From Pocillopora damicornis (lineage: Eukaryota), in NCBI RefSeq assembly GCF_003704095.1, contig NW_020847187.1, positions 62,001 to 126,000 on the forward strand: a stretch of 64,000 bases of DNA. Direction: 5' to 3'. The notes beneath the pieces were generated by a model. It was not told the origin of the DNA, made no database searches, and saw nothing but the letters and a program-made list of their open reading frames with translations. The translations under genes and the position numbers were made by a program. Shown here piece by piece: positions 4,183-64,000 of the stretch. Within the stretch, counting starts at the first letter, position 1. Each line of letters opens with the position of its first letter.

Positions 4183-4213
<31 letters not shown>

Positions 4214-16994: not shown

Positions 16995-19329
16995 ATGGAC
17001 TCATTTGGTCCTCTTTATTTATTGTTCCTCTTAGGAATCGTCCTAGGTATTTAATCAACACTTTTTGATTGTGTAGTTGTGTTGTGTAATTGCTTGAGTG
17101 AGGGTAGTCCTCAAAAATAATTTTTCTCGGTGAAACTTAACGTTGATAACAGCCTGCACTTACTGGGACGAACACACCACATGATCGATTGCTACCTCCA
17201 AGCTCAAGCAACAGGCTGACTGATTTTACTTTGCTTGTTTGATTTTTAATGTTAGAATTCTCGTTGTATCTCTAATTCACTTACATTTTGCTAAATACTC
17301 TTGTGGTACGAAAGACTGAAATGTACGTTTTCAAAGTTCAAATTCTGAATTAGGTACTTAAGACTAACTCCGTCTAAAGCTTAGCTTGCTGAAAACCTGA
17401 GACTACCTTCCAGAGACAAAAAATTTTCCATTTCACTGAGAGATGATTTGATTTGAAGTAAACTGCCTATACTCTATCGAACATGGTTAATTCGAGAAAG
17501 GAAGGTACTACCAGGTTTATATTTGCGCTACAGATGTGTCTTATCAGGGGACACATAAGATTGAATCGGAATCAGCAAAATCTGAAGGATCGAAGACCAG
17601 CATGTCGAAGATACATGTAAACTTTCCCCCAAATGGTCGTAATGTGAGCAGGTTTATAATGGTTTTAAAACTTTGTTTAAGTTAGGGTTTTAATCTAGGA
17701 TACATTAAAAAAAACGAGCATAACCTATCCAAAGGATGAGATATCTTTACTTACGGACTCCTCGGTAATTTGACGATCTGGAATCTGACTGAATCTCGTC
17801 TTTTAAATTTAGCTGGACATTGCACGCAGGCGCGCAACTTGAAGATCACAAGAGAGCGAAGATCAGGTAGGAGTGAAACGATAATCCTTGGAGAAGATTA
17901 ATAACAATGTCAAGCACCCTTGAGTTATGATGAATGAATAGAAATGCGCGTTGTGTTAACTATTACAAAGAAAGCAATACGATTTAGAATGAAAAGCCGG
18001 TCAGCTAACAGGTCAATACAACATACAAATTTTGTCAAGTGAGGTTTATACCGAAAAAGAGATGTTCATCTGAATTTGAAAAGAGAGCACAATGCATTCA
18101 AAAAACCATCTCACAGAGATGGCCTCTTTGAGTGATTGTAATCCTTCAGACGGGTTCGAATCCCTGGGTCAGACGGTTTCCATGATTTGTCACTCATAGC
18201 GTTTATGACGTCTGATACAGAAAGATTTGTCTCTGATGTTCTTTAAGGTATTAGCTAAATAAAGTTAAATATTACGGGCATTTCGTGCGATGGCATTCTT
18301 ATTTCACACCAAGGTGAATAAAAAGGTAGACCATTAATTGATGGGAAAAGAAAATCGCTTCAACTCAAAGAGAGATTCGTTGAGAAAAGCTCCCTTTTTC
18401 CTTACAGAAACTGCAAACATTGGAAACCCGCCATGAAAGAGTCTGAAGTACTTTGAAAATAAAATGTTGTTGAAACGCTGATCGGCGGTTTCTAATTCAA
18501 CATTTTCTGTCCGTTTATCTATTTCAGCTCCGTATCAAGTTCAAGTCTCTACGGGTGTTCAGGAAGGAGCGGGGACTGATGCCAACGTGTACTTAACTGT
18601 TTATGGAACCAAAGGAGAGACTATGGAAAAGAAGCTGATAAACACTTTTGAAAACAACTTTGAAAAAGGAAAGTACGTAAATCAATTGTCAGTCGACTGA
18701 TTCCTTGGCTCATATGCCATATTATGAGCGTTATTCAATTACTAGTCAGATCTGCTCCCAGTTAGTCAGTCAGTCAGACAGAAGTACATACATGACAGCC
18801 TATAAATCAAAAGTTCGGAAGTCAGTATTTTATCCACTTAGTAGACCAGTAAGTTATTCCTACATTCCATCATCCTGAGTCAGTGATGCAGTCAGCAAAG
18901 TACATCAGTCTTTCGGTAGGTTAGTTAGTCAGTCAGCCGCGCAATCAGTCGCTAATCTGTCAGTTCGTCGAGAATAATGATAGGAAAGCACATAGTGGTT
19001 ATTTTATATTTGCTACAGCGCTCCACAGATGGAAGCTTTGAGATTATAGCTAATGAAACTTGCATATGATTTAATTTCTCCTGCCAGAGTTGACAACTTT
19101 CAACTGAATTTAATGGACGTGGGCGAGATAAAAAAGATAAAAATAAGGCACGACAACTTTGGATTTATGCCAGAATGGAACCTGGATGGGGTACGTCAAA
19201 TGTTAATTGATAAGGGAACCTTTTGTGAATAGAGAGAAACGAGCACCAAAATAACCGGCAATTTAGAATTTTATCAAATTAACCCAGGTATGTAAGAAAT
19301 AAATCCATAATTTTAAAGACGTGAATAAA

Positions 19330-19362
<33 letters not shown>

Positions 19363-22300
19363 GCAGCGGGAGAGTATAACAGGGTAATTTAGTATTATCA
19401 ACTGAGTTGCTAACGTAAATTGGCCACTTTAAGGAGTTTTAAAGCTGAAGTTTCGAGCATTAGCCCTTCGTCAGAGCGAAATACGTCACTCCTATTAAAA
19501 CGTGAGATTGAGTGAAATGAACCCTTGGAAGTGTCGCTGTTTGAGATGAGCTGCCGGGGAATCGGAAATCGCTAGGTGAAAGCCGTTGAGAAGACAACTA
19601 GGTACGGACCACTTGAGTGGAAGCCACAGGACAGCTGATCAGTTCGCCGGGTGAACCAGTGAAATATCATCATTGATGTGCAGAGAAGCTATTCCCGTGA
19701 AGTTAGCAGGGCACTGAAATATCTTGCAGGAGACTCTAGTAAATCAGTAGCTCTCCAGATGCAGAAGTCTATCTTGACCAGTTCACTTCATTTCGCTTGG
19801 TCGGTCAAGATTCTATGCTGAACAGTGGTTTCACATCTTAAATTCATATATACAGACAATATCAGGAACCTTTTTAGTGCTCTAGTCACAAGGGGCTTTA
19901 TCCCAATTTCATAAGCAAGAATTTTATAAGGTGTACAATATCTTAACAATTAAGGTTTTATTTTATTTTTAGAGTATAAGTTTAGGTCTTCATCATAGGG
20001 TTGGCTACCGCTCACGCCGCCCAACAACCGTGCTTTTGATCTTGGCATCCAGAGGGTTTTTACTGCAATAATGATTATAATAATGGGAATAAAACCCAGG
20101 CCACAGCGGAGGGAGGCAAGTAGTCTCACCACTGCACCATTCCCTCACCTACCATTTTTTCATGCAATTCCTAATTGTCCTTAGTTTTTTTGCAAAAGGT
20201 CAAAATTACTGCGCCTGGGGGACAGGTATATGTGTTCACATGTGACTGTGATTTGAAGCAAGGAGCTTTGTCGAAAGAACTATTTCCTTCTGGACAGGGA
20301 TCAAAACAAGGCGGTAAATATACAAATTATTTTATTTGTTCTCTTCAGCACCACTTCGGTGCTTTCTCCATTTTCATTTTGTTGTTTCATCCCTATTAGT
20401 ATCTATTATTCATCGTACTCTTGTATTTGGTTATCGTTTTCGTCCTGTGCAGCTGTGGTTGGTGGTTTTGTTGGCGTTTTTAAGGACTCTTCCCACTGCT
20501 GGCCGTTTAATGATGCTCAAGCCGACTCATCCCCTGATTTAGTAGGAAACTTCCCAGCTCAGCTTAAGGTACAATGATGGATTAACAGCTTACTTGAAGG
20601 GTGGGATTTGATGTTCAGTATTGTGCCAATTTCGCCTTATCGTGTAAACGAAACCATAGTAATTGCAAAAGCCAATCAGAGCGAAAGATTTTATCCTAAG
20701 GAGCCAATGACAACAAAAAGTAACAATAAACCTGCTTAACGCCTGGGAAAACGTGAGTCACCGAGTCATGATTTGCATTTGAATGGTTGTGAGATTGGCT
20801 ACGTCAAGTATTTGTAGACTATTCGAAAAAGTGCAGTAAAGTTAAACCATTGTGGTCGTGAATGACGACGACTTCAAAAACGAATATTGTTGTGTAGGAA
20901 AGGCATGCACTAATTTATGGTGGTAATTTATGGATCATTTATTATGTTTTGAAGATCCAACCCAGTTTTCACTCTAGATGGTTATAAGCTTGAATTTGTG
21001 TTCACGATATTAATTTCTCTACTGCCACAATGTATACATTAAAATATTTCAAAACCTATCAAAAGTTAGTCATCATGTGCTGTTCGTTATTTCAGTGGTA
21101 TTCTCTCCTTTCATAGGACGGGGCTAGAATAGTAGATTCCGCGGCAAGAGGAAAAGTAGCCTCCACACTTGAACAAAACAGTTGGATTGATCTGGGAAAC
21201 TTTAAGGGTGAGGTTATCACCTGCATGTAATAATGTTGAGCAACACATGCTAAATGCTGTCATAAAGTTGATTCCACTCTTTGGCAATATGCTTCAAATG
21301 TGATTCCTTTATACCATGAAAAACAAGAAATCTGACCATTTTACCAACTTTTCCAAAACTATGATGGTTTTTGTGGGTTTCGCTCTTTGCATGTCTTACA
21401 AACTATCAGTTTGGGAATGGCTGATTACTGAGATAGTGAGGAAAACGTTTTAGAAACCGATTGATTGAATTCAAGATAGTTACATGTGCACAATTTAAGT
21501 CGAAAGTTTTAGATATATTAGGGTGTAAATTGGTAATCAGTTGTTTACGTCACTCAGGGATTCCCCTTTGAATATCTGAAATTTTGAAGTGTTTGATTTC
21601 CTTTTATGGAGACATTGAATAATACAGACCAACTGGCTGATGATACTTTACTTCAGAGCAAAGCTTATACTTCTATATTTGAAATTTGTTCTCAAAGGAA
21701 GATGCATCAGTGACCCATCTTTATGTGCTAATGGAGTTACCATGATTTTCTGGGCAAGAATCGAACAAGCAGCCCTCCTAACCGATCAGCAGCTTCCGAA
21801 ATACGTATTATCCAGTGGAGGGTCAGATCACAGATCCCGAGGATTCTCTTTTTTCCATCAGAACTATCAGTTTGTACTGAGAGTGTCGGCGGCTGAGAAA
21901 GAATGGAGAATTGAGATACCACAAGGACAAATACCGCTAAATTCTTGGTTTTCATTCGCATTTACCTGGAAAAATGGTACTTTCTTAAAATCAAAACCAT
22001 TTTAATATTTAGATTTAATTATTTCTCCGACTAATTAAATAAATGTTGTACAAAATGGATCTAGTTCCGAAGTCCTCTATTTTTTCTTATTTCCTTAATG
22101 AATTACAGAGATTTCTTTTTATGTGGTTCTAAGATGGTGTTGCATGGATCGTTTAAATTTCTGACCTTAAGAATGCAATAAAATTGACCACGAAATAGGT
22201 TATTATCATCGATATCAACAGCAAATTAGGCTGGATTCGAGCCAAATTGAAACCATTGAATTTCTAAAACGAATACAAACACTTCATGTTGGTTGTTAGC

Positions 22301-25300
22301 ATGCTGAGTGCATTCTATAAATTCCTACCGTAAATTTTTTTCTTGTTTTCTTGTAGAGGAGGGACTAAAGTATTACATCAACGGAACAGAGGCTGGTATT
22401 AAACAGATGAGCGAAAGCTTGGGTCAGATAAGAGGAAACGAATTCAACGACTTAAGGATAAGCAAACCCAACCATAACAATCTAGTGCAGGAGATGTTAC
22501 CAATGAAGTTTGACCAGTTTGCTACTTGGAACAGAATTTTGCAACCAGACGAGGTTAACCAGGCTTTTAACCAGGGTATGAAGGGCACACCCGACATTTC
22601 ATCAAAGTTTTTAAATTGTTTTTCGACCATAAAGTGATACTTTCCCATATGATCCTACTTTAGAGATTCCTCATATTACCCTTGTAATAGCTTCCACGAG
22701 TTCAGTATTAATTGAGTAGATCGGTTGATTAGTTTGGGTGTTAAAACAAATTCTTGCTCTCTTAAGAGGAACTGGGATATTGATTTGACTCAACTGGTGT
22801 CACTAGCCCATTCCATCTGTGTTACACACCTCACTGGATGCAACTTAATTGAGTTCGTTTAGCCAGACCTAAAGCATTCACAACGTCCAATGAGAACAAA
22901 TTGCTGGAAGGGAGGGAAATGGCGCTGAGTGGTGACCGAATCAATTTTTCGTTTTCTGTTTGTTTTTATTAATTGAGAGTGCGCCAAAAGCTGTGTTACA
23001 CCAATGAAAACGCAGTGCAATCTAAGATACTTTACACACTGTATGGGTAAAAAGGAACTACCCTAAACTTATAAAAAGCCCAGGGAGAAAATAGCAGGGT
23101 TCAACACGTCAAACTTATTAGCAACACCCTACTTTTATTTGATTGGCAGGTGGTGGGCTTCCTGACAAAGAAGGAAAACCCAACCCTCAAGGTTAGTACA
23201 TTCGTTTAATTGTAATGAACGTACTTGTTGATCGTGTTCTGTTATCGTCTGAAGAGAGTAATCCTGAATGAAAAATACTGTTTCTAAAGAAAGTATGCTG
23301 TTTGTATCACGTGACATTTAGCTTGTGAGCCGAACCCCTGCCTGAATGGAGGAACGTGTAAGACTGATGTTGACTCTCCTGAAGGCTACCGCTGTATTTG
23401 TACTCCGCAATACGCAGGAGTGAAATGCGAAAGTAAGAATTATAATTAATACCGATTTAAATGTTAATTTCTTCACCGAACTGTACGAGTTGATCTTCTG
23501 TCAATTAGACTTATGCCGATAGCTTAATTACTTTTTGTCGATCACTCTAAAAAGTTTTTGTTATTCTTTATTGAAACAGTCAAGGAAGATCAACAGCCAC
23601 AGACTACGCAGGGTAAGAACTCAAAAAGAATTATTTTAATTATAATAATTTAAATATAATTATGGTACAATTCAAATATGTAAGCATTTGAAAGTAGAGG
23701 GGAATCTCTAACGATAGAGTCTCGTAGAATTTTATTTACAAAGCCTAACGGCTTTCCTATCACCAATGTTATCCTGAAGCCCTATTGACATTATCGACAT
23801 TGCTGGCAACCACGTCACTCTTGGACCTAATGTTTTTCACTGTATTTCAGTCCTTTTATTTTGCTGTTTACCCTTGAATGCATTAAGTACAAAGCTTTGG
23901 GCTTGAAAATTGACCAAGTTCACCTTCATTAAAGTAAAAGTTAATTAACAATCAATCGCAGCAGGTACCACTATTGCATCTAGCACTGGTGCTACTGCTA
24001 GCGGGGCATCCACCACTGCAAGCCCCACCAGCAGTACTTTTACCACCGGAGCATCTGGAGGAACCACACGCAAAACAGGCAGCACCGCCAAATCTACAAG
24101 TGGTTCTTCTACACCACTTACAGGCACCGGTTCAAAAGGCACCACTGCAAAACCTACAGGCAGCACTGCAGGAGCAACAGGGGGAACCACACGCAAAGCA
24201 GGTACCACTGCGAAATCTACAAGTGGTGCCTCTACTAGTAGAACTTCTAGCACTGGATCATCTGGAGGAACCACTCGCAAAGCAGGCACCACTGCAAAAC
24301 CTACAAGCGGTGCCTCTACTAGTAGTGCTTCTACCCCTGGATCATCTGGAGGAACCACTCGCAAAGCAGGCACCTCTGCAAAACCTACAAGTGGTACTTC
24401 TATCACAGGAGCAACCGCTACTGCAACACCCACCATTTCATCCGCTGCCTCAACAGGTGCCACAGGCCCATCTGCTGGATCTACAACAGGTAAATCCACT
24501 TCTACCACAGATAAACCAATTATGGATATTCGTCGTTCAACGTCCCTCACAACAAACAAAGGAAATCTCACTGACTGTAGCGACGACTTTGAACGTTTCC
24601 AGAAAAACGCATGGACTCGACTTCAATCTTACAACAAGAACCTGACTCAAGACAAAATGCTATATTCAGAATAAGACAAACATGTAATTTACATGATTGA
24701 AATTGACAGTTTTAACCCCTTAACTTCCGTGAGTGACCAAGAAAGAATTTCTTTGGACATGCAATATTAACAGACAAGTGATAAAAATAAAGAAAAATAT
24801 CAATTAGGGGATTATTAGTTGATCCAAAACCAAATTCTCCTAAATAAGCTTAAGAATTATATGGCAGAAAGTAAGGAGAATTACGAATGAGATCTGAGTG
24901 AAAGGGTCAATCAGTTATGAGATTAGATGGAAACACAAGAGTAGAGGCTGACATCTCTCTTTGACGCCAACAGTTTATGTTAGTGTGACATAATGACAAC
25001 TACTCTAATGGAAACATTATATTACAGGCTGCCGTAGGCTCTTTTTCAGGTGCTGTCTTATGATTCGCATCCGTTGTAAGCAAAGAAATATTATGGTGTT
25101 ATTTTGTTTTTTCGCTGTAACATTTTAATTACTTAAATTAACCATATCGAATTCACAATCAAATAAATAAACGAATGAATAATTAGATGAATTCATGAAG
25201 ATTAACGTATGAATAAAGAAATATATAAATAAACTAGATATTAAAACCCGGTTATTTTACGGAGTTAGAGAACATTCTGAAATCGAACATTGTTACTTTT

Positions 25301-25318
25301 ATATCAGTTGGTTCTTAT

Positions 25319-25369
<51 letters not shown>

Positions 25370-28300
25370 ATTTATTTTACTCTCTTTTATTTTGTGTTAT
25401 ACAGGGTGCCCGTTGATACCAGTCTTGTGACTGAAGGGGTCACCCTGTTTAAATATCAATTATTATTGTTATAAAAGAAACTTTGCAAGGAAACGAATGT
25501 TGTAATGCTGAGTTGATGGCACATCTTATTAGAACTTACAATATAACTCCTGATGCTTTTTGTTTCTTACTATGCAACAGCACCTCCAACAACAGCTCCT
25601 CCGTCAACAGCTACTCCGACTGGAACACAAAGTCCACCACCAGATATAGGTGAATAGTTTGGTTTTATCCTTATTTTAGCAATATACAGAGGTCATTAAC
25701 TTATTATGATATTAAAGCCATTTTTTTTGCTCATGGGTGGCCCCCACAGGCACTGACACAGTTGCTTTTCAGCCAAAGTTCAAGGATAAATTGTGTAATC
25801 GTTGCGGATAATTCTAAAATAATTATTGTTGGTATGTTGTTATGTTCTCTGAATCCTGGAACGTTTTTTCTAACGCTGCACATGCAGATTACTGTTTTTT
25901 TCAAAGCAAAAACATTAGATGAGGATTGTTTCCCCTCCAGCTGAGCTTTTAACAAACTGGATGCCTTCCTTGTAATCTAGAGGCAGTTCTGCTCTTTATG
26001 AGGAATTAGAGTTCGTAAAAAAAAGCTCTCTGAACTTAACCTTATTTATTCTTTTATCTGTAATAGTGCAATTTTTACTTTTTGCAAATCAGTAACAAGT
26101 CAGTGACAGATGTATATGGTCTCACAAGCGAAATGACAGAAATTTGAATTTATTTTCAGAGCAACTCAAGAAGGATGTAGAGAAGCTTGTTAACGTCTTC
26201 CGAAATCTCCACCAAGCCTCAGATGTGTCAGATAGTCAGGAACTGAACCAATTAGCCAGCGAATGGGCAGAAAATCTCGCAGCTTCTGGCGAAGAAAAGA
26301 TTGATCCTGACTCAGAATTTGGGCAACTGGTATGCAGCCATCAGGCAGAAGCTGATATTGCCAAGGCATGCGCAGTCAAGTGGTATAGTGCCATCAGGTT
26401 CTTTGACTGGGCTGATCCTAAGCTCACTGTAAAGACGTCTCCGTTCACACAGCTGGTATGGCAAAGTACCACAAGCATCGGAGTTGGTATCGCTAAAGCT
26501 AAGGGAAATGCCAAGAGAGAGAATGTCGCGGGCAAATATTATATTGCAGTGTTTTTAAGTCCTGCACAGAGTGATGACAAGGTTAAAGAAAACGTACTTC
26601 CTGCGGCTGGTAGGTGATTCATGTGCTCTTACGTTGCGCTTAATGAAGATTCGAATTTCATTATCCAGTATATTGTACACCAGGAGAGGCCTATTTACAA
26701 AACATATGTATGTAATAGCAATCTGTAATCTTCTGATCCTTCACTTGTTTGTGTTTTTCTCCAGGAATCTCTACACCCTCACCAGATGGTAAGTATACGT
26801 GAAGGTAAATGGAAAAAATAGTTTCAGAAAATAACCAGTCTGTCAAACTTACTTGATACGTAAATGCTACGTAGGTGTACACACAAACCTAATCTTTCCA
26901 TCGCCAAACGTACCTCCACAATGGCCCACGTACCTGTATTGTTTCGGTATAATTCAAACAACAGAAAGAACACCATACTCCTACAAGTTCCACAACTTTA
27001 TTAAACAACGTGAAATATTCTTACTAAGGTGCGATTCCTGTAGGCGATACAGTAATTATCCTTGATAAAATAACTTAGGCCCACTACAAATTATAAATTA
27101 GCTCACCACTGCCACAATCTGATAGTTGTGTCCAAATCTCCTTGAAATGAATAATCTTCCACAATAGCTCTCTCTCGGTATCGCTCTCCGGACAATCAGT
27201 CACACCAGACAACAACAACTAGTACCACACAACTGAGTCCTTCTATACACTTACACAAAGTAGTCTAGAATCTGGAAGCTTAAAAGACAACTATTTTCGA
27301 AATATTAAATCATGACTACATAACCCAATAGAATATTCTGGAAAGTTCTATGGTATGCCAGACAATAGAAAGCTCTTTTATGTATGTCAGCATAACTAGG
27401 CATTCTAGAAATTTCTAGAAACTTATTTTCACAATCAATATCTATAAAAACATTCCTACCTATTCGACTACTTACCATCCTACCTAACCTTTTAACTACC
27501 TACATATTAACCTATTTCCCCACTAATCAGATTCCCTGCCTTCTTGCTTACCAAGTTACCTTCGTACCTACTTACCTACCTATTTATCAAATTTCTTTCT
27601 TCTCCTAGCTAGTGATAAATTAATTTACCTGCCATTTGTTAGTTTGCTTGTTTTGTTTGGTGAGCCATTTATTTTATGTCCTAATCTATTCGTCTTTCTC
27701 ATTCTTCGTTTATCAAGCTGCCTGTCCTGAAGGCTACTTTAAAATACCGATGGGTGTTACTCGATCATGTTTCACCGTCCGTAACACACCAGTGACCTGG
27801 GATGACGCTCTGCTTGGTTGTGCTCTTGATAACGGTACCCTGGCTTCGCTTGAGAGCAGAGAGGAAGCTGACCTGGTTGTTAGTTTAATTGCAAGTAAGC
27901 TAACATCCTACTTTGTTCGAAACTCAAATGTAATAAACTCGAGATAGCCATTCACTAAATTAAACACCCTTTTGAAAAAGAGCCCCTCCCATCGGCCAAA
28001 ATCTAAGATAAAAAACCTCCCTGACTCGAGTCAAGTGTCTCCTCCCTCCTCACAGTTTTATGGACGAAAACTAGAACACAGTAAAGGATAGGTAATGCGA
28101 ACGATTAAGAGCTTTGAGTTCCCCTTCCACGATGAAAATTGGCACTTACGATGCTACAGGTTTTGAAGTGGAGGTGCAATACGTTACATCGAGGCCGTGG
28201 TAATAGGTAAAAGTTCCACGAACGAAATTACTTGCTTTTAAGCTATTACCCAACCATTTGTAGTTCAATGCCCTCGAGGTAGTGCCACTACCATTTATTA

Positions 28301-31300
28301 GTGATTGCTGGTCCACACATAGTGCTGGTTGATGAATGAAAGCTTAACAAACGTCCTCTGTTTTCTTGCACGATTTTATAAAGAAGCCAACCTTACAGAA
28401 GCTTGGATTGGACTCCATGATCGCTCAACCGAGGGCCGTTACGTTTGGGTCTCAGGATCGCAAATTCCATTCTCCGAGTGGCTGCCCGGTGAACCTGATG
28501 GAAATGAAGGACAGAGCTGTATCGTGCAAGCCAAAGGGGAATATGGACCTGGATGGGCTGACAGACAATGTTCCGATAGAAAGGCTTTTGTCTGCGAGGT
28601 TCCCGCTCCTGGTAAGAAACAATGATAATACAAAGCTTAAATCATATCTTTCAGTCATTCTCTAATCAACAAGTTACATTGGGTGTAAAGCTTTAATTGA
28701 CGTAAATGGCAATGACACTCGGTTCTTTATGGCCAAAGGACACCGATACATTTTCGTTGATCGTGGAATTATTATGTGATAACTATGGGACCTGTAAAGT
28801 CTGTCGAGACGCCGGTTATAGGATCACAACTCACGATAGCCTTAAAACAATATTCACGTTACTTAAATACATTTAACAGCATAAGTACTCATATTCAATA
28901 TACATTCATGCAAATCATGCTGATCAATTACCACAACAAAATCCTGCTCAAAGACACAACATAACAGGAATTACCAAAGAATGGGCGACCATGCTTACGT
29001 TTGCACATGTATTAGCATACAAAATATACTTATCATGATGTCAGGATGAAATCAACGACAGGTTCTTGTTTAAAGTAAGCCTGATTGATTGGTCGGCTAT
29101 TCTCTTTTGTGTTATTGTTAACTTCTCAATGCAGGTCATACCTTTTACAAGTTAACGTTTAACCTGACGGAACCACAAACACAGTCGTCCCAGTACACCT
29201 CCTATTCTCAGTACTCCCAGTCCTTTTATCCTGGGTCATATTACCCAACCGTGTGTGCACCTGTCATTCAGAATGTGAATGATATTCTCAGGGATACGGT
29301 AAGCTACTGTATGCGTAAATACTTTGTGAAAAAAGGTAGAATGAGGCGGTTATGACGTGGAATTGAATTTTTAAGGAAAAGGGTCACCTAAGGATTATGA
29401 TATACAATGGAATTGTAAAAAAAAAAAAAATGAAAGACTAAGTTGTATGCTTTTAGAAAAATTTTTAGAGAATAGAAAATCGTGACCAGTCTGTAATTGT
29501 TATGGTAATATAATTCTTAACCTGGAAAAAATCACGTTCTCCAACTCTTGAGGCCATAAAGCCACACCATCGCATCGGCTACAATTCATTCATTATTAAT
29601 TGCTCCATGTCAAGTTTTCGTTCAGGTATGCATAATGATTTTTCCTTCATAAACCCGAAGTGATTGTATTTGCACATATAGTGATCAGTTGCAAAGCAGA
29701 CTTGAGAACTTAAACAAAATAAATAACGCATGCGCAATGGTACTCTGCTCTCTTAAACCATTTGACCCCAAAGAGTCTAATTTATCCATACAATATCACC
29801 TGAATCGAACATTAAGTTCACAAGCCGAATAAAGGAAATGATCACCGACTTAAGTTCTCGATTGTTCCACAAATTCTCCTTGTCAGCACCTTAAGAAATG
29901 CAAAGAGAACAGTATGGAGAATATTCATGCTGATGTTATGGTGTACAAGGGTTAATCATCGATAATATATCAAATGATATATGGTCCTTCTCTTACTGAA
30001 GGAAATTTTGAAGGCAAATAATTAGAATTCAGGCGAAAAAACTTGGCTTTTATTTTAGAGGACTCTTTCCTCAATTCCAGTGTGAAAATAGTTAAGAAAG
30101 TTGAGATATCGTGCTCAGTATCGGCCGAACAATCTAAGGAACCGATGATTGAAGAATTGTACTCTTTTTCCCTCGCTCGTGGCAAATGTCAATCACATTC
30201 TTACTTGTCTTACTACTTAGAAGTTTAAGCCCAAGTCTCAAAATAAGAATACGAAAGCTGAAACTATTTTTGTTTTAACATTTTGTTGATTTGTTAACTC
30301 TTTGACAGATCGCTCGTTACTTCCAAGCAAAGAACCTTTCAGTTCAGCCAATTGTGAACACAATCAGGTAAATGAATCATCTACGTACTGAATAATTGAA
30401 TTATTTTTCTTTTGATTTAAGAGTTGTCTATTTTCTCCCTTTTTCTTTAGGTGCTTGCCAGACGGCAAATCAATTGTTGAGGTTATCTTGAGGTTAGGTC
30501 CGGAGGCCAGTCCTGACTCGATTGATTCACTTAAGACCAGTATTAATGAGAATGATGGAGAACTGGAACTAGAAAATGGAGTATCTGCTAAACTTATCAA
30601 TGTGACAATTCTCCTGCCAGGTAAGTAGACCATCAAGCTCTATGCAAGTGGGAAACAAACGTTTATCTTAATTGGAATGTGGTGGTATTGACTAAATTAA
30701 TTATGACGTAGAACGAAGTAATTGTGAGCATTCCAAAATTGCAGGATACTGATGGTGGATTGGTAAAATGGAACACAGCGCTCAGTTGTCTTCTTCAAGT
30801 TAACCCAACTATATCTAAACCAGCCTTTAACTTCATATTTGTATTTTGTTTTCACTCAGTTTGGGAGTATTATCATTGCATTACGCCCAAGAAACATTCA
30901 GAGCGTTTAAGGTTTAGAGCCACTTCATGACAATAATTAATTAGGCAGATGAGAAGAGGTTTGATATCCGCTGCTGGCCTTTTGCCGTAAATTATATGCT
31001 CATTTTCATTACAATAGCAAGAGAAATCCACGGTAGGCTGCAACTCCTTAATTCTCACGGTTTGCTGAGTGAGCAAGGGTCTCTTGATCAAATGTGACCT
31101 CTAATAAGACCTCGTAAAATGTTATTGTTCATTTGTGCCACAGGCGCTGACCTCGTAAAATTTTTTTGTTCATTTTTACCACAGGCGCGTCACTTTGCCC
31201 AAACCAATGTGTGAGCAGCACCTGTCAGCCAGGTTGTGACCCGACTTGCTGCGCCCAGGCTCCAGCTCCCGTAGCAGCAGTAGGAGTAGCAGCAGGAGCA

Positions 31301-46669: not shown

Positions 46670-46870
46670 GAGACTCTCAATGGGATTAACCATCAGCAGT
46701 AAAACGGAAAAAATAATTATAAAAAACGTAATAAATTTTAACCATTAGTCGCAAAAAAGTGGACAATAAATTTTTTTTTTAACTCAAGGGGAAAAAATAG
46801 ACCGTTAGCCGTAAAATGGCCATAATTTTAATCGTCAGCCGTTGGGTAAAAGTCACTCCATTGAGACCGT
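46670..46870. mobile_element. MITE-like element (copy 2)
   Basis: gagactctcaatggga ... tccattgagacc termini and the same subrepeats. Confidence 0.55.
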
Positions 46871-50300: not shown

Positions 50301-53300
50301 GATATGTAGGTTACAAACACCAGCTACGGCCCTAAAGCGAGTTGATGTCCGTTTGCTGTTAAAAAGATTTATTTGTTATTTTTCTTTTAGGCTTCTCACT
50401 TAAGGATTGGACGTATACACTTAGCTACACAATATCCCATTCGTATGGGTGCCATGAGCGACCCAAAGCAGTACTTTAGAGGCAGGGTCACTTGTCTGCA
50501 GATTTATGGAATTGCACTGACTGCCAACCAGATACAATCTGTAAAGACGAAATGTGCCGCCGGCGACAGTAAGTGATTTGATGTAATTCAGAAATATTTG
50601 GCTAGTAATTTGCCTTTTTTGACTTAAACTATGCTTAATAACTCAATATTTCAGAGAAAGATCCTTGTCTTGCCAGTCCTTGCAAAAATGGAGGGAGCTG
50701 CATTGTGGACACGAAAGATAACACCGGCTATCGATGTCGCTGCAAACCAGGGTACCGTGGACATCGATGTGACGGTAACAATTATTCGCTTGAATGTCTT
50801 TATTTTAATTTAATTCAATTTGATTTAGAACCAAGCTCAGGGGAAACGATGGCGTTTTCTTTTCACATAATCCCAAATAAAATTGATCATTGTCCATTTG
50901 AAATGTCAACACGAACATTTCCCTGAATGGAAAGAGAGAGAAAAAAATTTATTTGAGTTCAGAGGACCACCAACAGGTAATTTTAACTGTTGAATTATCA
51001 ATTGGTGAAATTATTTAGTTGCTTCCATGTGTTATCGACCGCAAACAGTTAAAGTGATACATAGAGAAGATGCATCAAGCGATAACTGCGAGATGTTAGA
51101 TTCACCTTTTTGAAGGCGGACCCAAGAATATCAAGCAGAACTTTACCGTTCACATCCTAATCATCATTATCGCCGTTATTATCATCATCGTATCATGTCT
51201 GCAGTTTCACGGTTCGTTTCGATCATCTTCCACTTTGGCCTTTGACTTCCTTTATTTGCAACTGCTTACAGAAAAACCAACACAATCAACTGGAAAGCCA
51301 ACAGCAAGACCAACTGGAAAGCGAACAACAGCAGCAAAAGGTAATCACAAAAATGTGGATCACGATAGCAACATAAAATTCTAAGTGGTGTAGATGACGC
51401 TTCGTACACTTATACTTTGGCAAATACTCGCAAGTATGTTGTTAGCAGCGAGCCTGAGATCCCTTTTCTAGAGACTGGTCCCTATAAAGTCATACTTCGA
51501 TAGCTTAATAAAAGGAATGAAAGTCTAGGTCTTGGCTTAAAGGTCATTCTCTTCTGTTTTGGGTTCGGATATTTTTATGGTATAAACTTCAAAACGAAAA
51601 TTATTTCGACCCCGAATGTTAGCACAGCATACCATAAAAATAAAGCATTCCGTGTCAGGCAAAGACGCCCTTGTCATTTGTGCATGTTTCTAAATGATAG
51701 GGACTGATGCAAAGAGGTACTTTCCTTTGCCTAATTGTATCCCTTCTCTAACATCACTAAGGATCACCGGGCCGAAAAATTCCAAAAACACCAGGACAGA
51801 CCACCAAGCCCGCCAGCACTGGAGGAGTAACCACCCCTGGAGCTATCACAAATATAAGTAAGTTTCCGGAACCATAGCAAGATTTTTCAAAACTGTTCAA
51901 GACAGTCATAATCTGTGCTTAACGCTTATTGACTGAAATGTATTAATAATGTCGAAGTAAAATATGTTATTGGTATGGTATTTCAAAGTAAGAAATTCGC
52001 ACACCGTAAATCTGAGGTCAGAAAATAGGGTGAAATTGCTCTGCTCCTTGATAGCAGCGAGTTATCTGAAAATAGAGTCCGTCATCTTTCTCACGTGAGT
52101 AGAACCTCACGACATTTTACTCTCACGAATCGTGGGTTACACATTTTGAAAATCGTCATGATCCAAACTTACTCTTACAGATGGTTTCCGTATAGAGGTG
52201 GTGGAGTTTATCAATCGATTGAGACGCCTGCATGGTGCAGGTCCTCTTATTATTTCCACTCGTATTTCTACGGCAGCCCAAAACTGGGCTCAAGTCTTGG
52301 TCTCCAAAGGCACAGCCTCCATAGATCCGAACACGAATTACGGCACGAATGTGTTCACCAAGGTTGGTTCTCAAACTGGTTTGGCCCAGTTGGCTGTGGT
52401 GACATGGTACACATCAGTGAAGCATTATGACTGGGCCAGGCGCCAGCCAAAAATTCTGGCACTGCCTTTTATTCATCTTGTATGGCTCTCAAGTAACTTT
52501 GTTGGTGTCGGATTGGCCAGGTCGCCATCTGCAAAGTTTTACATTGTTGTGTACTTTGACCCAATGCCTGGAAATAAACAGCCGTTGCTTAAAGAAAACG
52601 TTCTACCATATACAGGTATGCGACACAGAAAGAAATAATACTCACTTAACTGTCTAAACTATAGCGCGAGGTAATGATACAGGTTCTTAGTCCGGCGTTA
52701 AATACTTCAAAAGCAATTTTTTTCCGAAATTCAGAAAGGGAAATGTAGTAAAGAATGACTGTAAATTGCTCCGAATAGGAATATTCGTTACTGCTTTGGT
52801 TGTACCACGCACTTTTTCACCAATTCAAAGATTAGCAAGTTAGAATAAGAGGCAGAAAACGGAGATGTTGGATAAATTAAATGTTAACTTGGTATTTCAA
52901 ATCTTTATTCCTAGATGTATACATCCTATTGCAGAGTGGTAAGTAAATTATTGTCTCCTTTTCGTTTGTGATGCTCCCGCTCAAAAATTTGATTTAAGTT
53001 TTATTTTCTCAATAAATAAAAGACCCTACAATGCTCAGGGCTCGGGGATTAAAATCGAGAAGCTTTTTTTGTGTGTTTATAGCCAAAATGCAGGTTACAT
53101 CTCAGGGGCTATTCATTTCGTTAATCAATACCAAAGAAGTAATTATTCTACCACCTATTGCTCACTGCAGTAAAATCATCAAGGTGTTTCTGTGCAATAC
53201 TACGTATTGTAACTCTGTCAATCTCATTCAATAGCACTGTGTACCAAGGGATATACGCTACACAAAGGAACTTGTTACAGATATCATACGGATAAACAAA

Positions 53301-56300
53301 CTTGGGAGGGAGCATTGTTTCAGAGCGCCAAAGATAACGCTACCTTGGTATCCTTCCACCAGACATACGAGGTTGGCTTTGTCCAAAGGCTTATTACACC
53401 AGGAATAACAGGTTTAGTGTGGACAGGCTTGAATGATCGGATCACGGAGGGGACGTATACGTGGTCGGACGGTACCAGTGTTGATCACACTTCTTGGAAA
53501 GCAAACGAACCAACGGGTTTAAAGGAAGACTGTGTTGGTATAGAAGGGACTAGCTATGGCACCCTGATGTCTGATGCTCCATGTACTGAGCCACATAGTT
53601 ACGTGTCTAGAAAGCCACTTGAAGGTGAGGAATTGCCTCTTTATCTTACTTTTCAGAGACTTTTTGAGAGAACACCGATGGATTATATATCACGCCACTG
53701 CACGTTTGACCCAGAAAGCTCTAGCTAGAGCAGCACTATAGATCCTTAAAACATCACAGAGTCGCAGTCCACAACTCAGGTTTACTGAACATTACCTTCT
53801 TAGTGTAACAAAATGTGCGTACAACCCAAAACCAGGACGCATTTGAGATCTGTAGAAGGAACTAACTTTTAAACTGAAGTACAGATTTAAGACTGGTTCC
53901 TCACCTGCACATTCTAAAACACTACTTTTAGGACTAATTACATATCGAATGAAGATACAACTTACTTCTTTACTGTGGACGGATGACTACGGCCAAGCGA
54001 CGTCTTTCCCGTATTTGGACCTCAAGCAAAAGATAGAAACAATGGTAGGTTTTTGAGCTGTAAGTTAATCAATGTGTTATGGGTCAGTTGAAAACATAAA
54101 GAAAAATAGCCAAGTACAGCCGTTTCCATGTTATTGCGTACCATAAATTTGAGGATTTAACTACAAGGCACCCACACTGTGATTTTTACAAAGGCTACAG
54201 CTCTTCCCACGTCTCAATACACTTCCAAATAGTATCTAAGATATCAAACAGTTTTCGCATGTAGTATCGCATCTATAAACCACCTTAGAGTGGTCGTTTA
54301 TACAAATAACAAACTGAAGATGACCTCATCAGTTGATAATGGCCCTATTAATGCTTTTTTGCTATTATTGATTTCCTTCCCTAATTTTAGCTGCTGGAAA
54401 TCTTTAAGATTGATCCGACCTTCGTGTCAGGATATGTCGAAGATTTCAGGTAAATGCATGTATACTTTGCTGAGAAGACTTTAATCAGTGATCAGTTAAT
54501 TTCCTCTTTAACAAAACTTTTGGTGATGAAATGTTCGTATCTTTTTTCCATCTGATCATTAGCTTTTTCCCACAGCAAAACACCTAAGCTAATTTCTCAA
54601 CCTACTGCTAAGCCAACAAAGCCTGGTATTGCGACTCCTGCCAAGTCATCAGGGACATCTCCAGTCTCTGGAGCCACCAGACCAACACTGGTTTCCACAG
54701 GAACCACACAGGCCACTCCAGCGTCAAAACCTACTTCAGGTGGAGCAATTTCCAAGTAAGGAGTCGACATTAAAATTGTAATGATTTGTGGTTTATCGTC
54801 TCTCGCGGAAACAGGCCTTACTTAACAAACGAGGGGGCTACAATATCTTATGACCACAAAAAAAATAGTAAAAAAAAACTTCACGACCCAAATGTATGAA
54901 ACATTTTTCATCTTCTCTTTCGTTTCTCGGAAAAAAATCGATATAAACTCTTTTTTTTCTATCTGCTAGTGAGAAGTCGTCGGTGACAAGTTCAATTATT
55001 TTGAAGTTTGGACCAGGAGTAAAACCTGATCCTACAAAGCCATTTCAAAATCATTTGAGGAGGAACCTTGGAAGACTTCCAGGTCCGGTCAATCTGAAAA
55101 CTCTTATCCAATCCGTCAGAATAGTTCACCCAGGTAAGTTTTTACATAAATATGTGAAAGTGAACGAAAGTATACCATGGTTTTAAGGTAGACGCTAAAT
55201 AGACCTCCACAACCTACTTCAACCTTTTCCAATGTTATATTATGTATTTTTTCATTTATCTCAGGAGTTCCACCAGCTGTGTTGGGAACTTGTACACCCG
55301 CCTGCTATACCACTTGCCTCGTCTCTTGTAATCCATTTTGTTGCAATTCCAAAATGGCTGCTGGAAGCAATATACAGTACTCTGCCATGCGACACGCTGT
55401 AATAACCCAAGCAAATCGCAGGCGATTTATTATGCCTGGCTTTTCGGGGTATCCAATGGCTCCCCTCCAGACCATGGTACCGCAGGCCCGTGCGATGACA
55501 GTTCCAGTGACCCTGGCAATAAGATGTGTTCCAACCGTTCAGGCACCTTGCCCACCAGGCACTCAAGTTTCACAAACTGTTCAGGGCTCTTATAAAATGC
55601 CTCAACCTCGAACTATTCAAGGAATCTTGAGCCCAAAGCGACGTCCGATCGTGTCGATCCCACGCTTGACATTGTCAAGGCTTCCTTATTCAACCAATCA
55701 GCAGGCATTTCTCCCAAGGGTCGCCAATCCAGTGCAGATACCTTGTATACCAAGTCTTTATAACCTATGTCCACCATTAATACGTCCCCCTACAAAGCCT
55801 CTGAAAGTGACAGATCCTCCACAGCACATAATACATCTTCCACCGCCTCAGATGCAGCCACCGTGCACTCCTGGCGCATTCAATCCTTGTCCACCACAAA
55901 CAGGTCTTCCTTCAAGTCCTTTAAAATTAACAGATCCTCCTCAACACATAATACATCTTCCTCCGCCACAGTTACAGCCACCCTGTATTCCGAGTGCGTT
56001 CAATCCCTGTCCACCACAAATAAGTCCTCCTTTGAGACCTGTGAAAGTAACTGATCCTCCGCAGCATGTGGTTCATTTACCTCCACCACAGATACAACCT
56101 CCTTGTATTCCTAGTGCGTACAACCCATGTCCCCAGCCAATTATACCCCCTGTGAATCCTGCACTTGCACAATCCCCACCACAACAAATGAATCGTCTGC
56201 TACCACCACAGATGCAACCTCCCTGCATTCCATCTTTATACAATCGTTGTCCACCTCAGACGAATACTCCACCTTCCAAATTAAAAGTTATAGATCCTCC

Positions 56301-57696
56301 GCAACATGTGATACATTTGCCACCACCCCAGATGCAACCCCCTTGTATTCCTAGTGCGTACAATCCATGTCCTCAACCCATTAGGCCCCCTATAAAACCT
56401 GCACTGGCCACGTACCCACCACAACAATTTATGCGGCTGGTACCACCACAGGCGCAGACTCCTTGTATTCCTAGTGCGTACAATCCATGTCCCCAACCAA
56501 TTACGCCCCCTATTATGCCTGCACAGGCCAAATACCCATCACCACTTTTATGGCCTGTGCTTTGCATTCCTCTTCCTAACCGCCCTTGTCCTCCAAGAAA
56601 GCTTTCGAAACCATCACACAAGAAGGGCAAGTCTCGAGCTTTCATGCCCAAACCCGTTGTGAGTTCCTATGTGGTCCCGTATAGCAACTTACCATACTGG
56701 CAATCTCGGGTGGCATCCTATACTCCATTTGTCGCACCGCCATTTCCAGTCTACCCAATACGGCGATTTCCAACCTATGCAACCCAAAATTATGGCCAAA
56801 AACCACCATTTCAGCGGTATCGCTCCCCTGCCTTGTCTCAGGTGTCGCCAATACAGCCGTTTGGATTGCCTCCTTGGGGTCCAATGCCTTTCCCCTATTT
56901 CAGCCGAGTTACCAAACCTTCTCTCGGTGACAAACCTAAAAAGACTTTGCCTGAGCCTCCAAAGCCCTCTCAGGCTCCTCAACCGCCTAAGCCTATTCCA
57001 GTCAAAGGACCAATTTCTTTACAAGGTTCTTTAACTCTTTATCCTAAGCCAGCACCAATAGCTCCTCCTTTTCCTTTCCCTCCGTATCCCCCAGGACAAA
57101 ATCCCTTCTCAATGATCAACCCCTGCATCCCTTCTCTAGCGAATCCCTGTAATCAAAATACAGGAAATGTACCTTCAATACCTCCTACGAATTCGTACGA
57201 CAGAAAATCTAGGCCTATACTTTTAACACGACCTCTGCAGGTTCAAGGGAGCATTTATCTCAAACCACCTCCACCACGCCCATTCCCTATACCGCCGAGT
57301 TATACATCAAGTGTTATGAATCCTTTTTCCAGGCTCGTTTCTCCCAAACCACCAAATGCACCTCAGATAGCTGCGTCCCCCCATTCAATAATTGTTCAGC
57401 TTCCCGAAATTTCTCTTCAGACTGCTCCAGCATCTTTACTTCCAAAGCCTATCGTTCCACCTCCACCACCTTCACCAGTCTTTCCAAGTAGCTGTCCAAT
57501 ATCCTGTACTCACTATCCAGGAGTATTTTGCCCTTCATATTGCGCGAAATATTGTTGTAAAAAGAGAGGTAGGAAACAGAAGAGTCCCTCGAAGACGAAA
57601 AGTAAGAAGCCTGATAAAAATAAGATGCAAAAAGAGGCCAAGGCAAAAAGCAAAGAGAAAAAAATTTTGAAAGTGAAAAAAGCTAAGAAGGGATAA
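47321..57696 (+). CDS. Gene E: secreted NOWA-like protein SP-VWA-LamG-EGF-mucin-CAP-CTLD-SEA(split)-CRD-Pro-rich repeats-CRD-Lys-rich tail (~1793 aa, 15 coding exons)
   Basis: Exons: 47321-47402 (SP); 47814-48389 (VWA); 49408-49871, 50391-50568 (LamG); 50655-50774 (EGF); 51272-51340, 51762-51857 (T/K/P linker); 52181-52615 (CAP); 52915-52938; 53235-53624 (CTLD); 53932-54044, 54391-54449, 54576-54755, 54970-55133 (SEA with insert); 55265-57696. Total 5382 nt, in frame. Confidence 0.87.
47814..48389 (+). CDS. Gene E von Willebrand factor A domain exon with intact MIDAS
   Basis: [14 protein letters not shown] (DxSxS), [25 protein letters not shown]. Confidence 0.93.
48850..49240. repeat. SINE-like repeat with an internal 155-bp tandem duplication in gene E intron 2
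   Basis: 48884-49035 and 49039-49190 are near-identical direct repeats. Confidence 0.75.
50070..50114 (-). ncRNA. Minimal type I hammerhead ribozyme motif within a Penelope-derived short repeat (~50005-50120)
   Basis: Minus strand TGACT-CTGATGA-TGAC..GTC-GAAA-C-GTC-AGTCA: perfect 5-bp stem I, intact core boxes and a GUC cleavage triplet. Confidence 0.7.
55741..56590 (+). repeat. Coding 120-bp (40-aa) tandem repeat, 7 copies plus a degenerate one, in the gene E terminal exon
   Basis: cc[ctg]tg[ct]a..cc.....c.ta/tc aa.cc.tgtcc recurs at 55741, 55861, 55981, 56101, 56221, 56341 and 56461; unit approx [36 protein letters not shown]. Confidence 0.95.
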
Positions 57697-58461: not shown

Positions 58462-58561
58462 NNNNNNNNNNNNNNNNNNNNNNNNNNNNNNNNNNNNNNN
58501 NNNNNNNNNNNNNNNNNNNNNNNNNNNNNNNNNNNNNNNNNNNNNNNNNNNNNNNNNNNNN
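58462..58561. other. Assembly gap (100 N)
   Basis: Run of N. Confidence 1.
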
Positions 58562-61865: not shown

Positions 61866-63693
61866 ATGAGGGGACTCTTAGGAATTTTTCTTCTAACATT
61901 TGGTCTCCTTGTAAGAGCTAGAGGTAAGGACACGAAAATATTATATCCACCTTAAATTAAAAAACTTTCCTGAAATTCAAAGTCACAATAGATTTTACCT
62001 TTTCCTAACGTATTCAAACTCGTTATGAGCGACTTCCCTATCTATTCTTTGCATTGTTCTACCCGAGTTAAAATCAATCGATGTAAAGCTGTTGTTTTTC
62101 CACGGCACAACTGGTGGTCTCTCACAATTGAATAATTAAAAAAAACCCTTTTCCCAATAATACTGTCTGCCTGACTGCCTTAAGCTTCCTTGGCTAATTC
62201 ATCCACACAATGAAGTAATATTATAAACGTTAACTATTCTCCTGAGTTAGAATTATCTTCCTTTGAGAATTCAGGTTTTGGAACTATTACTGCAGTTAAT
62301 AAAAGAAAATAGACAGGTTGCGCGACTAGTTTCTAAATTAAGTTTCTAAATACGCAAAAACAGAGCAAGTAGATACGCTAGTTCTATTTTCCCGCCATTG
62401 GTGATGCTAGCTCTTTTGTGTTTTACTCTGCAGAACACGACAGTTTATCTCCTACACCAGGCCTTAACGACGGTTAGTAAAACTGACAACTTTCCCGTGT
62501 GGCTGTAGAATATATATGCCCTCAATATGCTTATTCGAGAGGCTGGAAACTCGTCTCAACCAATAAAAGCCATTAACTTAAGTGTTTGGAATGGACTGCA
62601 TTCCCTATCATCAGCAACCAAATATCCAAAAATCCCCATTACAATGGATGCCAATCACTGTTTTAAAAGCGAGAAAAAAGTAAATTTTATAAAAATTGAA
62701 GAGATACTTCCCATCTTAGAGGAGTTTGTGTTATATTACAGCATTTACCGACAGCAGTGACGAAACTGCTGCACCGTCTTCGTTCTCTGATTCTGCTAGC
62801 CGTCACCATCATAACGCCAATAACGATTGGCTATCCGAAGATGATGACGATGATGACGATGACGTCATGGACGAGAGCCAGCTGAATGTGCAGCCAGCTG
62901 CCTCAGCCAAGACCGCAGCAAAAGCTGCCGCTAAACCCCTCTCTACTGGTAGGTTGAAACAATGACGGAAGTCAACAAATAAATTGAATGAAACGTTTAA
63001 GTTTGATTCTTAATAGAACTGCAATATGATAGAGAAAGAGAAAAGTTGGTTCCCAAACTGACCAGACTCAGACTTACAAGTTAAACGAAAAATATGAGTT
63101 CGATGAAAAACTAAGTATGCCTCTACTTGCTTGTTTAGTCAGTTTGCCATGAACGCCGGCGGAACGAACGAGGTCTTTTAATAACTGATTTACTTACTTT
63201 CACAGTGACTTGTTTTTATCTTATCATATTTACACAGTGCAACTGGAAAGCAAGATATTGTACGAGTTGAGCGGTTATCGAAGGTTATTCGGTGGAGGCC
63301 CTCTTTTTAGGTCGGCAACCCTTGACATTGGAGCTAAAGCCGCTAACGACAAGATGCAGAAAGGAGGCGTGATCAGGAAAGATGCCAGCATCAAACACGG
63401 ACAACTGCAGTGCATAAAATTGATAACTTCAGACAAAGTGTCCGCTGAGTGCAACTCCTTTTGGTTAAAACAAATGCAGGATTACGACTGGTCAAAACCA
63501 GCACTGAAAGATAACAACAGGTTTTTCGTCACAGCCGTTTGGATGGCAGCAACTCATGCTGGAATAGCGGTCAAAAAGGGTCCTTCTGGAAGATACTTTG
63601 TGACCATCTTGGTCGATCCCGCTCCTGATGTAAATAATCCCAAGGCTCTTCCCGATGTTAAAAAGTTGAAAGCCAATGTAAAACCATATACCG
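61866..63693 (+). CDS. Gene F (5' part): secreted protein SP-acidic/Ala-rich linker-CAP, a fourth paralog of the family; continues beyond the window
   Basis: Exons 61866-61923 (MRGLLGIFLLTFGLLVRAR), 62434-62472, 62742-62948 (poly-Asp) and 63238-63693. The CAP exon (YRRLFGGGPL, YDWSKP, AVWMAATHAGIAV, ANVKPYTG|gtaag) ends exactly like the gene E CAP exon (ENVLPYTG|gt). Confidence 0.8.
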
Positions 63694-64000
63694 GTAAGGG
63701 AACTAAGATCAACATGGCCTCCTCGATTTAATTGATTAACAAGATAATTTATCAACTCCTATAACATGTAGCTACATGTCTGTAAACGAGCAGATGATGT
63801 TCCAACGAAGAAAAAGGTCCCGGGTCATTATAATATTTTTGGAAAGCCTGTCAGGACACGCAATTATCTCCATTTGACGCCACTATCGCTTTTTAGTTTG
63901 GTCAAAACTTGTAGTTTAAAGTTGTGCAGCATAACGAGGAAGACGAAGAGACAAAAAAAATTCGAAATAAATTAAGATCAAACAGCTCGTTTAGGAGAGA

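Follow-up and report, generated by a model that had tools for sequence, protein, structure and literature searches.

A tandem cluster of NOWA-family genes in the coral Pocillopora damicornis, probably encoding cnidocyst structural proteins

Four genes, B, D, E, and F, lie in tandem in a 64,000-nucleotide stretch of the genome of the coral Pocillopora damicornis, hereafter the window (contig C3822:62001-126000 of an assembly of 234.35 Mb in 4,393 contigs). All four are on the + strand, with predicted signal peptides beginning at 16995 (B), 36403 (D), 47321 (E), and 61866 (F). Each encodes a secreted protein in which an N-terminal module is followed by a CAP/SCP domain, a micro-exon linker, a C-type lectin-like domain (CTLD), a SEA-like domain, a cysteine-rich domain (CRD), a low-complexity spacer, and a variant CRD. 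These genes probably form an old, conserved tandem cluster of the anthozoan NOWA family that encodes structural proteins of the cnidocyst. The evidence comes from the protein architecture, the transcription and splicing of gene E, the conservation of the family, and synteny.

An earlier, sequence-only reading of this DNA had proposed four same-strand paralogs, the three complete ones with a common core of CAP, micro-exon, CTLD, SEA-like domain, and CRD. Pfam matches on the exons and the CRD motif support this core, and the differing N-terminal modules and tails that it was said to carry were borne out as well. The N-terminal module is PLAT-LamG-EGF-mucin in B, VWA-LamG-EGF in E, and an acidic stretch in F; D has none. 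The linker between CAP and CTLD is an 8-residue micro-exon, and the C-terminal end is usually a basic tail. Pfam was applied exon by exon to the stop-free frames of the + strand; joined translations served only for frame checks and the choice of junctions.

Gene models and the spliced mRNA of gene E

Four independent poly(A) RNA-seq studies supplied the RNA contigs that were mapped to window positions 52100-57700. In every run, one contig of 3-4 kb links the CAP exon of gene E through to its CRD exon. The seven introns from the CAP exon to the terminal exon are all GT..AG in the RNA contigs, and joining the exons gives an open frame of 1264 codons that ends at the stop 57694-57696. The earlier reading had named RNA with CRD exons unspliced to the CAP-CTLD exons as a ground for refuting it; for E this objection falls away, since the CRD exon is spliced to the CAP and CTLD exons in single RNA contigs of all four studies. 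The contigs extend upstream of the CAP exon by about 1.6 kb, via an exon ending at 51857, which suggests that the VWA, LamG, and EGF exons are linked to the CAP exon. The order in E is signal peptide, VWA, LamG, EGF, linker, CAP, micro-exon, CTLD, SEA with a mucin cassette, CRD, spacer, CRD, and Lys-rich tail; the spacer is a 716-aa Pro-rich stretch with C-x7-C loops and 3% Gly. The features of gene E are as follows.

47321..57696, + strand: whole gene, signal peptide at 47321; Pfam, and RNA joints from the CAP exon onward
47795-48451, + strand: VWA exon (PF00092 5e-32)
49398-49877 and 50391-50573, + strand: LamG exons (Laminin_G_3 9e-4, 3e-4)
within 50642-50923, + strand: EGF exon (EGF 6e-8)
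52181..52615, + strand: CAP exon (RNA joints; PF00188 7e-13)
52915-52938, + strand: 24-nt micro-exon, DVYILLQS (GT..AG joints in 4/4 runs)
53235..53624, + strand: CTLD exon (RNA joints; PF00059 8e-12)
53932-54044, 54391-54449, and 54970-55133, + strand: SEA-like exons (RNA joints; SEA 7e-4 on 53934-54044)
54576-54755, + strand: P/T/S-rich cassette exon between SEA-like exons (RNA joints)
55265..57696, + strand: terminal exon (RNA contigs to beyond 57700), with CRDs at 55291-55344 (exact C-x3 spacing) and 57493-57558

Some further observations concern gene E. Its spacer contains units of the form DPPQH-x2-HLPPPQ-x-QPPCIPS-x2-NPCP (window 55700-57000), which combine the C-x7-C loops with H-x2-H; loops of this kind also occur in F, in the Nematostella protein P0150, and in the E ortholog of the anthozoan contig L009. 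One RNA run (X13) has an in-frame 9-nt deletion at window position 57457, in the terminal exon shortly before the second CRD. Runs from different studies also differ at many single bases, which would fit strains or sister species. The intron between the VWA and LamG exons holds a G+C-richer segment (window 48795-49180) with two similar open-frame units of about 40 residues, which looks like a remnant of a repeat or mobile element.

Gene B has the order signal peptide, PLAT, LamG, EGF, Ser/Thr/Gly-rich mucin-like stretch, CAP, micro-exon, CTLD, SEA-like domain, CRD, Ala/Pro/Gln-rich spacer of 45 aa, CRD, and basic tail. Its exon chain was guided by the Montipora ortholog P0151. The LamG and EGF exons are 43-70% identical to P0151 and P0159 (tblastn), and the mucin-like frame lies where P0151 has a long low-complexity region.

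16995..31489, + strand: whole gene, ATG and signal peptide at 16995
18533-18672 and 19088-19224, + strand: PLAT exons (PF01477 7e-10 and 0.01)
20453-20568, 21117-21207, 21698-21976, and 22357-22617, + strand: LamG exons (Laminin_G_3 1e-4, 2e-3; weak, exon-split)
23322-23431, + strand: EGF exon (tblastn)
23949..24671, + strand: Ser/Thr/Gly-rich mucin-like open frame of 241 aa, no Pfam match
26189..26611, + strand: CAP exon (PF00188 4e-12; 60% identity to P0151)
26765-26788, + strand: candidate 24-nt micro-exon (ISTPSPD), an AG/GT-flanked 24-mer resembling Montipora ISEPAPGA, predicted from the sequence alone
about 27678-27914 and 28323-28611, + strand: CTLD exons (PF00059 1e-3, 2e-9)
29135-29298, 30309-30367, and 30451-30620, + strand: SEA-like exons, by alignment to P0151; no Pfam SEA match
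31185..31489, + strand: terminal exon, with CRDs at 31196-31252 and 31388-31450, ending NKRRSRVRIHKF

Gene D has the order signal peptide, CAP, a candidate micro-exon, CTLD, SEA-like domain, a degenerate CRD, one full CRD, and a 358-aa acidic/basic tail.

36403..41945, + strand: whole gene, signal peptide at 36403; Pfam, with predicted junctions
36668..37088, + strand: CAP exon (Pfam CAP 1e-8)
37476-37499, + strand: candidate 24-nt micro-exon, predicted as in B
37615-37809 and 38220-38420, + strand: CTLD exons (Lectin_C halves 1e-8, 6e-8)
about 39044-39160, middle near 39424-39483, and about 39917-40068, + strand: SEA-like exons with approximate bounds (paralog alignment, junction enumeration); weak Pfam SEA match, E 0.07 on 39040-39204
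40639..41945, + strand: terminal exon, full CRD at 40803-40868

The 24-nt micro-exons had been proposed for B, D, and E; that of E is established by RNA joints, and those of B and D stay candidates read from DNA.

Gene F had been taken for a partial gene. It is completed just outside the window, in C3822:126001-136000 (L001), with the same layout as the other members. Its CRD-spacer-CRD part is split over two exons, and the spacer is Pro-rich with C-x7-C loops.

61866..64000, + strand: 5' part of gene F, signal peptide at 61866
62720-62962, + strand: acidic exon in this 5' part
63234-63695, + strand: CAP exon (weak Pfam CAP match, 0.06; tblastn to P0150 9e-18)
L001 450-839, + strand: CTLD (PF00059 6e-13)
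L001 1082-1198 and 2086-2277, + strand: SEA halves (SEA 3e-4 on the first-third exon)
L001 1513-1698, + strand: P/T cassette between the SEA halves
L001 2440-2493 (canonical) and 3918-3983 (variant), + strand: CRDs (CRD motif)
58462-58561, no strand: assembly gap between E and F

The gap lies 766 nt after the stop of E, just past a polyadenylation signal (AATAAA) at 58411, and 3.3 kb before the start codon of F. No coding exon touches it, and its flanks have no 12-mer in common. A fifth, unlinked member was found on contig C3313 (about 433100-439200, - strand; L003/L004), with CAP, CTLD, SEA-like halves, and one CRD; its terminal ORF (open reading frame) carries CPSYCMNSQCMPAACSPWCC and a 428-aa Q/P/Y-rich tail. 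This genome thus holds four clustered members and one unlinked member.

The SEA domain was proposed for all three genes that are complete within the window. It finds support in D and E, and in F as well; B gave no Pfam SEA match. The exons of 37-39 residues that encode the first third of the domain match only SEA in Pfam (3e-4 in F, 7e-4 in E, 0.07 in D), with PF01390 scores of 21.2 bits (F), 20.2 (E), and 13.7 (D) against a gathering cut-off of 26.4; Nematostella P0150 exceeds the cut-off with 28.5 bits. By language-model features, the region neighbours SEA clusters in the Atlas (0.84), which serves as a lead only. The AF2 model of P0118, a Montipora-type fragment of the B ortholog, shows beta-alpha-beta-beta-alpha-beta at residues 311-434 with pLDDT of about 55-68, in a model that is poor overall (mean pLDDT 51). 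VIA structural matches of this unit are ferredoxin-like (bS6, Z 8.5-8.9), with no SEA chain among them, and the Foldseek and VIA lists for the whole model are dominated by CAP and CTLD matches; the structural comparison does not confirm a SEA fold. Profiles of the two SEA halves searched against the PDB returned chance-level matches only (an ADGRF1 fragment at E 0.87, haemoglobin). Taken together, sequence similarity supports calling the domain SEA-like in D, E, and F, and weakly in B.

SEA autoproteolysis was considered as a general feature and ruled out by the lack of a conserved G/S motif. The G/SVVV motif is not kept in B (DGKSIVEV), D (AGLGITVS), E (the mucin cassette, then EKSSVTSS), or F (KKKVIVKL); Gly-Ser occurs at the homologous strand only in relatives (NGSSLVEV in P0118, DGSSDVAV in P0085). 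A P/T/S-rich cassette stands between the SEA-like halves in E (seen in RNA), in F, and in Nematostella P0150. No cassette exon is present in B at the homologous intron (30368-30450).

Kinship with NOWA and conservation of the cluster

NOWA is laid out as CAP, CTLD, and C-terminal CRDs, and the Hydra protein carries an octad of the latter. The coral proteins have the CAP domain (PF00188 4e-12 in B, 1e-8 in D, 7e-13 in E; by tblastn in F) and, after it, the CTLD (PF00059 in B, D, E, and F), with the order given by spliced RNA for E. The octad of CRDs is absent from B, D, E, and F, which have 1-2 CRDs each. When the whole window is translated in six frames, the regular expression C-x3-C-x3-8-C-x3-C-x3-CC matches 5 times, always on the + strand and in a terminal exon (two in B, one in D, two in E), against 0 matches in 100 shuffles. 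The published consensus is CX3CX3CX3CX3CC (PMC4863159); this exact spacing is found in the first CRD of E and of F, with near variants elsewhere. The second CRD departs from this spacing in a conserved way: its second loop is longer, C-x3-C-x6-7-C-x3-C-x3-CC (CPxxC-x6-7-CPSYC-x3-CC). A profile of the five CRDs was searched against 177,635 distinct PDB sequences and matched only the CRDs of Hydra NOWA (2hm3, 2hm4/5, 2hm6), with all six Cys aligned, though weakly (E 0.2-0.9). Together with the agreeing layout, this supports the proposed kinship with NOWA.

A CAP search of the whole library was dominated by multi-CAP proteins; the informative relatives are P0085, P0118, and P0150. Nematostella XP_048578328.1 (P0085) has PLAT, mucin, CAP, CTLD, CRD, spacer, and CRD, and Nematostella XP_032226184.2 (P0150), annotated as "proline-rich extensin-like", has an acidic stretch, CAP, CTLD, SEA, CRD, a Pro-rich spacer with C-x7-C loops, and CRD. 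Both are recorded on a contig of the same size, 13.7 Mb. Montipora XP_068742639.1 (P0151) has PLAT, LamG, EGF, mucin, and CAP, CTLD onward, and is the ortholog of B with 43-70% identity per exon. The full-length Nematostella and Montipora relatives are otherwise annotated as "uncharacterized". The 550-aa P0118 might suggest a short CAP-to-CRD isoform, which was ruled out: the 1615-aa Montipora model is 98% identical over the common part, and P0118 most likely comes from a transcript contig that broke within the mucin repeat.

In the tree of CAP exons, each paralog of the window falls in its own clade with other taxa (SH-aLRT 98-100), and F groups with the acidic/Pro-rich Nematostella protein (SH-aLRT 98). 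Because each has a well-supported clade with other taxa, the paralogs are old lineages; the expanded family that had been suggested is not a recent expansion. Synteny, which the earlier reading had suggested checking in other corals and anemones, is seen in two other anthozoan contigs. On contig L009, an E-type gene and an F-type gene are direct neighbours on one strand, with the E-type gene upstream, and on contig L010 an acidic ORF similar to gene C, a small neighbour of B described below, lies about 4.7 kb downstream of a B-type gene. Downstream of the Montipora-type B ortholog on L005, an ORF was observed (L005:20159-20483) that has a run of Asn and, at its C-terminus, a retroelement-like motif. 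As this retroelement-like ORF follows the B ortholog, L005 gave no synteny information.

The likely role in the cnidocyst and its alternatives

Hydra NOWA was reportedly described by Engel and colleagues in 2002 as a nematocyst outer wall antigen. Garg et al. 2023 (PMC10014300) re-defined it, assigning it to the tubule as a late component and no longer to the outer wall; in this respect the sequence-only reading, which had tied the CRDs to the nematocyst wall, does not hold as stated. The protein forms CRD-linked aggregates, and its CTLD has been proposed to bind chondroitin (PMC10014300). The sequence-only reading had also taken the cluster for a distinct family, which does not hold as stated, as the family is already recognised. 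Bergheim et al. 2025 (PMC12549020) name NvNOWA-1 to -4 and a NOWA-related protein in Nematostella: NvNOWA-3, NvNOWA-4, NvNOWA-related, and NvNOWA-2 are NV2.10388, 10390, 10391, and 10392 and form one hierarchical orthogroup, and NvNOWA-1 is unlinked to these four. The same paper reports that the paralogs are expressed differently in nematocytes and spirocytes and lists NOWAs among cnidocyte-specific genes. A "highly derived NOWA homolog" is likewise cnidocyte-specific in Nematostella (PMC6161364), and in coral transcriptome papers some transcripts carry the NOWA label and vary together with minicollagens or from one tentacle type to another. Since Nematostella already has named NOWAs with subtype-specific paralogs, the coral cluster is an anthozoan variant of a known family. 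Known, then, are the family and its subtype-specific use. The searchable literature on the NOWA family contains no description of the SEA-like domain, the CRD-spacer-CRD cassette, or the PLAT and VWA modules.

By analogy with the biochemistry of Hydra NOWA and minicollagens, the proteins would most likely be secreted into the growing cnidocyst vesicle of cnidocytes. There, disulfide reshuffling in the terminal CRDs may tie the protein by covalent bonds into the polymer that minicollagens form in the capsule or tubule. Glycans of the tubule or capsule may be bound by the lectin domain, whose Ca and sugar motifs are preserved only in part. The variable N-terminal modules and spacers could give cnida types differing surface or elastic properties, and different paralogs may serve nematocytes and spirocytes. 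A role of the cluster in the cnidocytes of this coral, and a specificity of its paralogs for cnida types, are suggested by these analogies.

Several points weigh against an assignment to the NOWA family and the cnidocyst. The matches of the CRD profile to Hydra NOWA are statistically weak, and each coral protein has one CRD (D) or two (B, E, F) compared to 8 in Hydra NOWA. The lectin domain retains its sugar-binding motifs only in part, with EPD/WAD in B, HAD/WDD in D, EPT/MSD in E, and QPT/MAD in F. The pairing of CAP and CTLD is not unique, being found also in vertebrate CLEC18. Orthology to the named NvNOWAs is suggested by architecture, copy number, and cluster structure. The RNA libraries are bulk, whole-holobiont samples labelled coral or marine metagenome. 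In the Nematostella study, NvNOWA-1, -2, and -3 were quantified by mass spectrometry in mesoglea preparations too (PMC12549020).

The bulk RNA and the mesoglea data would also fit general extracellular-matrix, mucus, or adhesive glycoproteins of non-cnidocyte cells (gland, epidermis, or calicoblasts), with Cys ends acting in mucin-like disulfide multimerisation, and PLAT, LamG, EGF, VWA, SEA, and mucin-like stretches are typical of matrix proteins or mucins. We consider this unlikely: the CRD pattern and its sole PDB matches indicate nematocyst proteins, the cassette of CRD, Pro-rich spacer, and CRD mirrors the minicollagen layout, and the cnidocyte-specific listing of Nematostella NOWAs cited above also speaks for cnidocytes. 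Secreted recognition or venom-type proteins with CAP and C-type lectin domains (CLEC18-like or CRISP/snaclec-like), acting in immunity or envenomation, are quite improbable. In CLEC18, EGF domains separate CAP from CTLD and CRDs are lacking, and the long Pro-rich spacers bracketed by CRDs, with the conserved NOWA-like layout, favour a structural polymer. The nearest Atlas clusters of the CAP-CTLD part are indeed vertebrate CLEC18 (language-model features, 0.84, below the reliable level), and the fold of the P0118 model matches GAPR-1, Pry1, venom CAP proteins, and snake-venom C-type lectins, but these matches are at the level of the fold only, in very widespread domains. It is hardly credible that the genes are an illusion of annotation, made of unrelated exons or decayed pseudogenes. 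Although B, D, and the 5' half of E were modelled from open frames and homology, E has spliced RNA contigs, and the genes keep their frames intact, begin with signal peptides, and have orthologs in three other taxa whose domains follow the same order.

A membership of the NOWA family with a structural role in the cnidocyst is therefore the reading that we prefer. A wider proposal is more doubtful and is offered as tentative. It holds that an ancient hexacoral cluster combines one covalent anchor, made of the SEA-like domain and a collagen-free CRD-spacer-CRD cassette, with interchangeable adhesion modules. On this view, each paralog might serve one cnida type and form its wall or thread, the adhesive thread of the spirocyst among them, and the mucin cassette at the SEA cleavage loop might tune the tethering of the outer modules.

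The protein basis of the differing walls and threads of piercing nematocysts and adhesive spirocysts is poorly understood, and work on NOWA has so far centred on a single Hydra protein. The anthozoan family has a conserved layout of its own, with a SEA-like domain, two CRDs around an elastomer-like or Pro-rich spacer, and large N-terminal adhesion modules, in a gene cluster conserved between corals and probably sea anemones. The locus supplies testable candidates for cnida-type-specific structural proteins of reef corals and gives the published Nematostella expression data a link to a defined architecture.

Neighbouring genes and comparison with known systems

Between B and D lies gene C, a tiny Asp/Glu/Tyr-rich ORF (window 33922-34173, + strand). 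Its counterpart (L010:20371-20448) is 58% identical and is the acidic ORF mentioned above. Because this counterpart sits downstream of the B ortholog in L010, gene C is a conserved neighbour and not noise. Head-to-head with B, on the - strand, is gene A (window 410-11161), whose features were read from ORF translations only.

10847-11161 and 9305-9541, - strand: PLAT
8721-9029, 4456-4764, 2161-2562, 410-736, and 3311-3535, - strand: F5/8 type C (discoidin)-like exons
5051-5842, - strand: LamG-like exon
2826-3107, - strand: TSP1-like exon

In Nematostella, the protein NVE5730 is cnidocyte-specific and combines thrombospondin with F5/8C domains (PMC6161364). The likeness of gene A to it is a lead suggesting that further cnida genes may lie in the neighbourhood.

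The coral proteins resemble Hydra NOWA in being secreted and in having an N-terminal CAP/SCP domain, then a CTLD, then six-Cys CRDs and a basic end. They differ in that their 1-2 CRDs stand at either end of a low-complexity spacer and that the second CRD has the longer loop (x6-7). They also have an added SEA-like domain, mucin cassettes, and, at the N-terminus, PLAT-LamG-EGF or VWA-LamG-EGF modules. The C-terminal part is similar to minicollagens and cnidoin (PMC4863159, PMC4321713), in which two CRDs, one N-terminal and one C-terminal, enclose a Pro-rich or low-complexity spacer and a basic end follows, and the same chemistry would be expected, namely disulfide reshuffling into a polymer. 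No Gly-X-Y collagen repeats occur between the CRDs in the spacer sequences of B and E, and the coral cassette forms the C-terminal end of a large CAP-CTLD-SEA protein rather than a free-standing small protein. Vertebrate CLEC18 also has CAP and then CTLD in one secreted protein. It differs in its EGF domains between the two and in lacking SEA and CRDs; in the coral proteins, the 8-residue micro-exon joins CAP and CTLD with no EGF domain, and CRDs are present.

The closest comparison is with the NvNOWAs of Nematostella, where four members have consecutive gene IDs and one is unlinked (PMC12549020), as four coral members are clustered and one is unlinked. The unlinked C3313 member mirrors the unlinked NvNOWA-1. 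The available text of that paper gives names and expression rather than the domain layout (PMC12549020), and Nematostella P0085 and P0150 have the full layout of the coral proteins.

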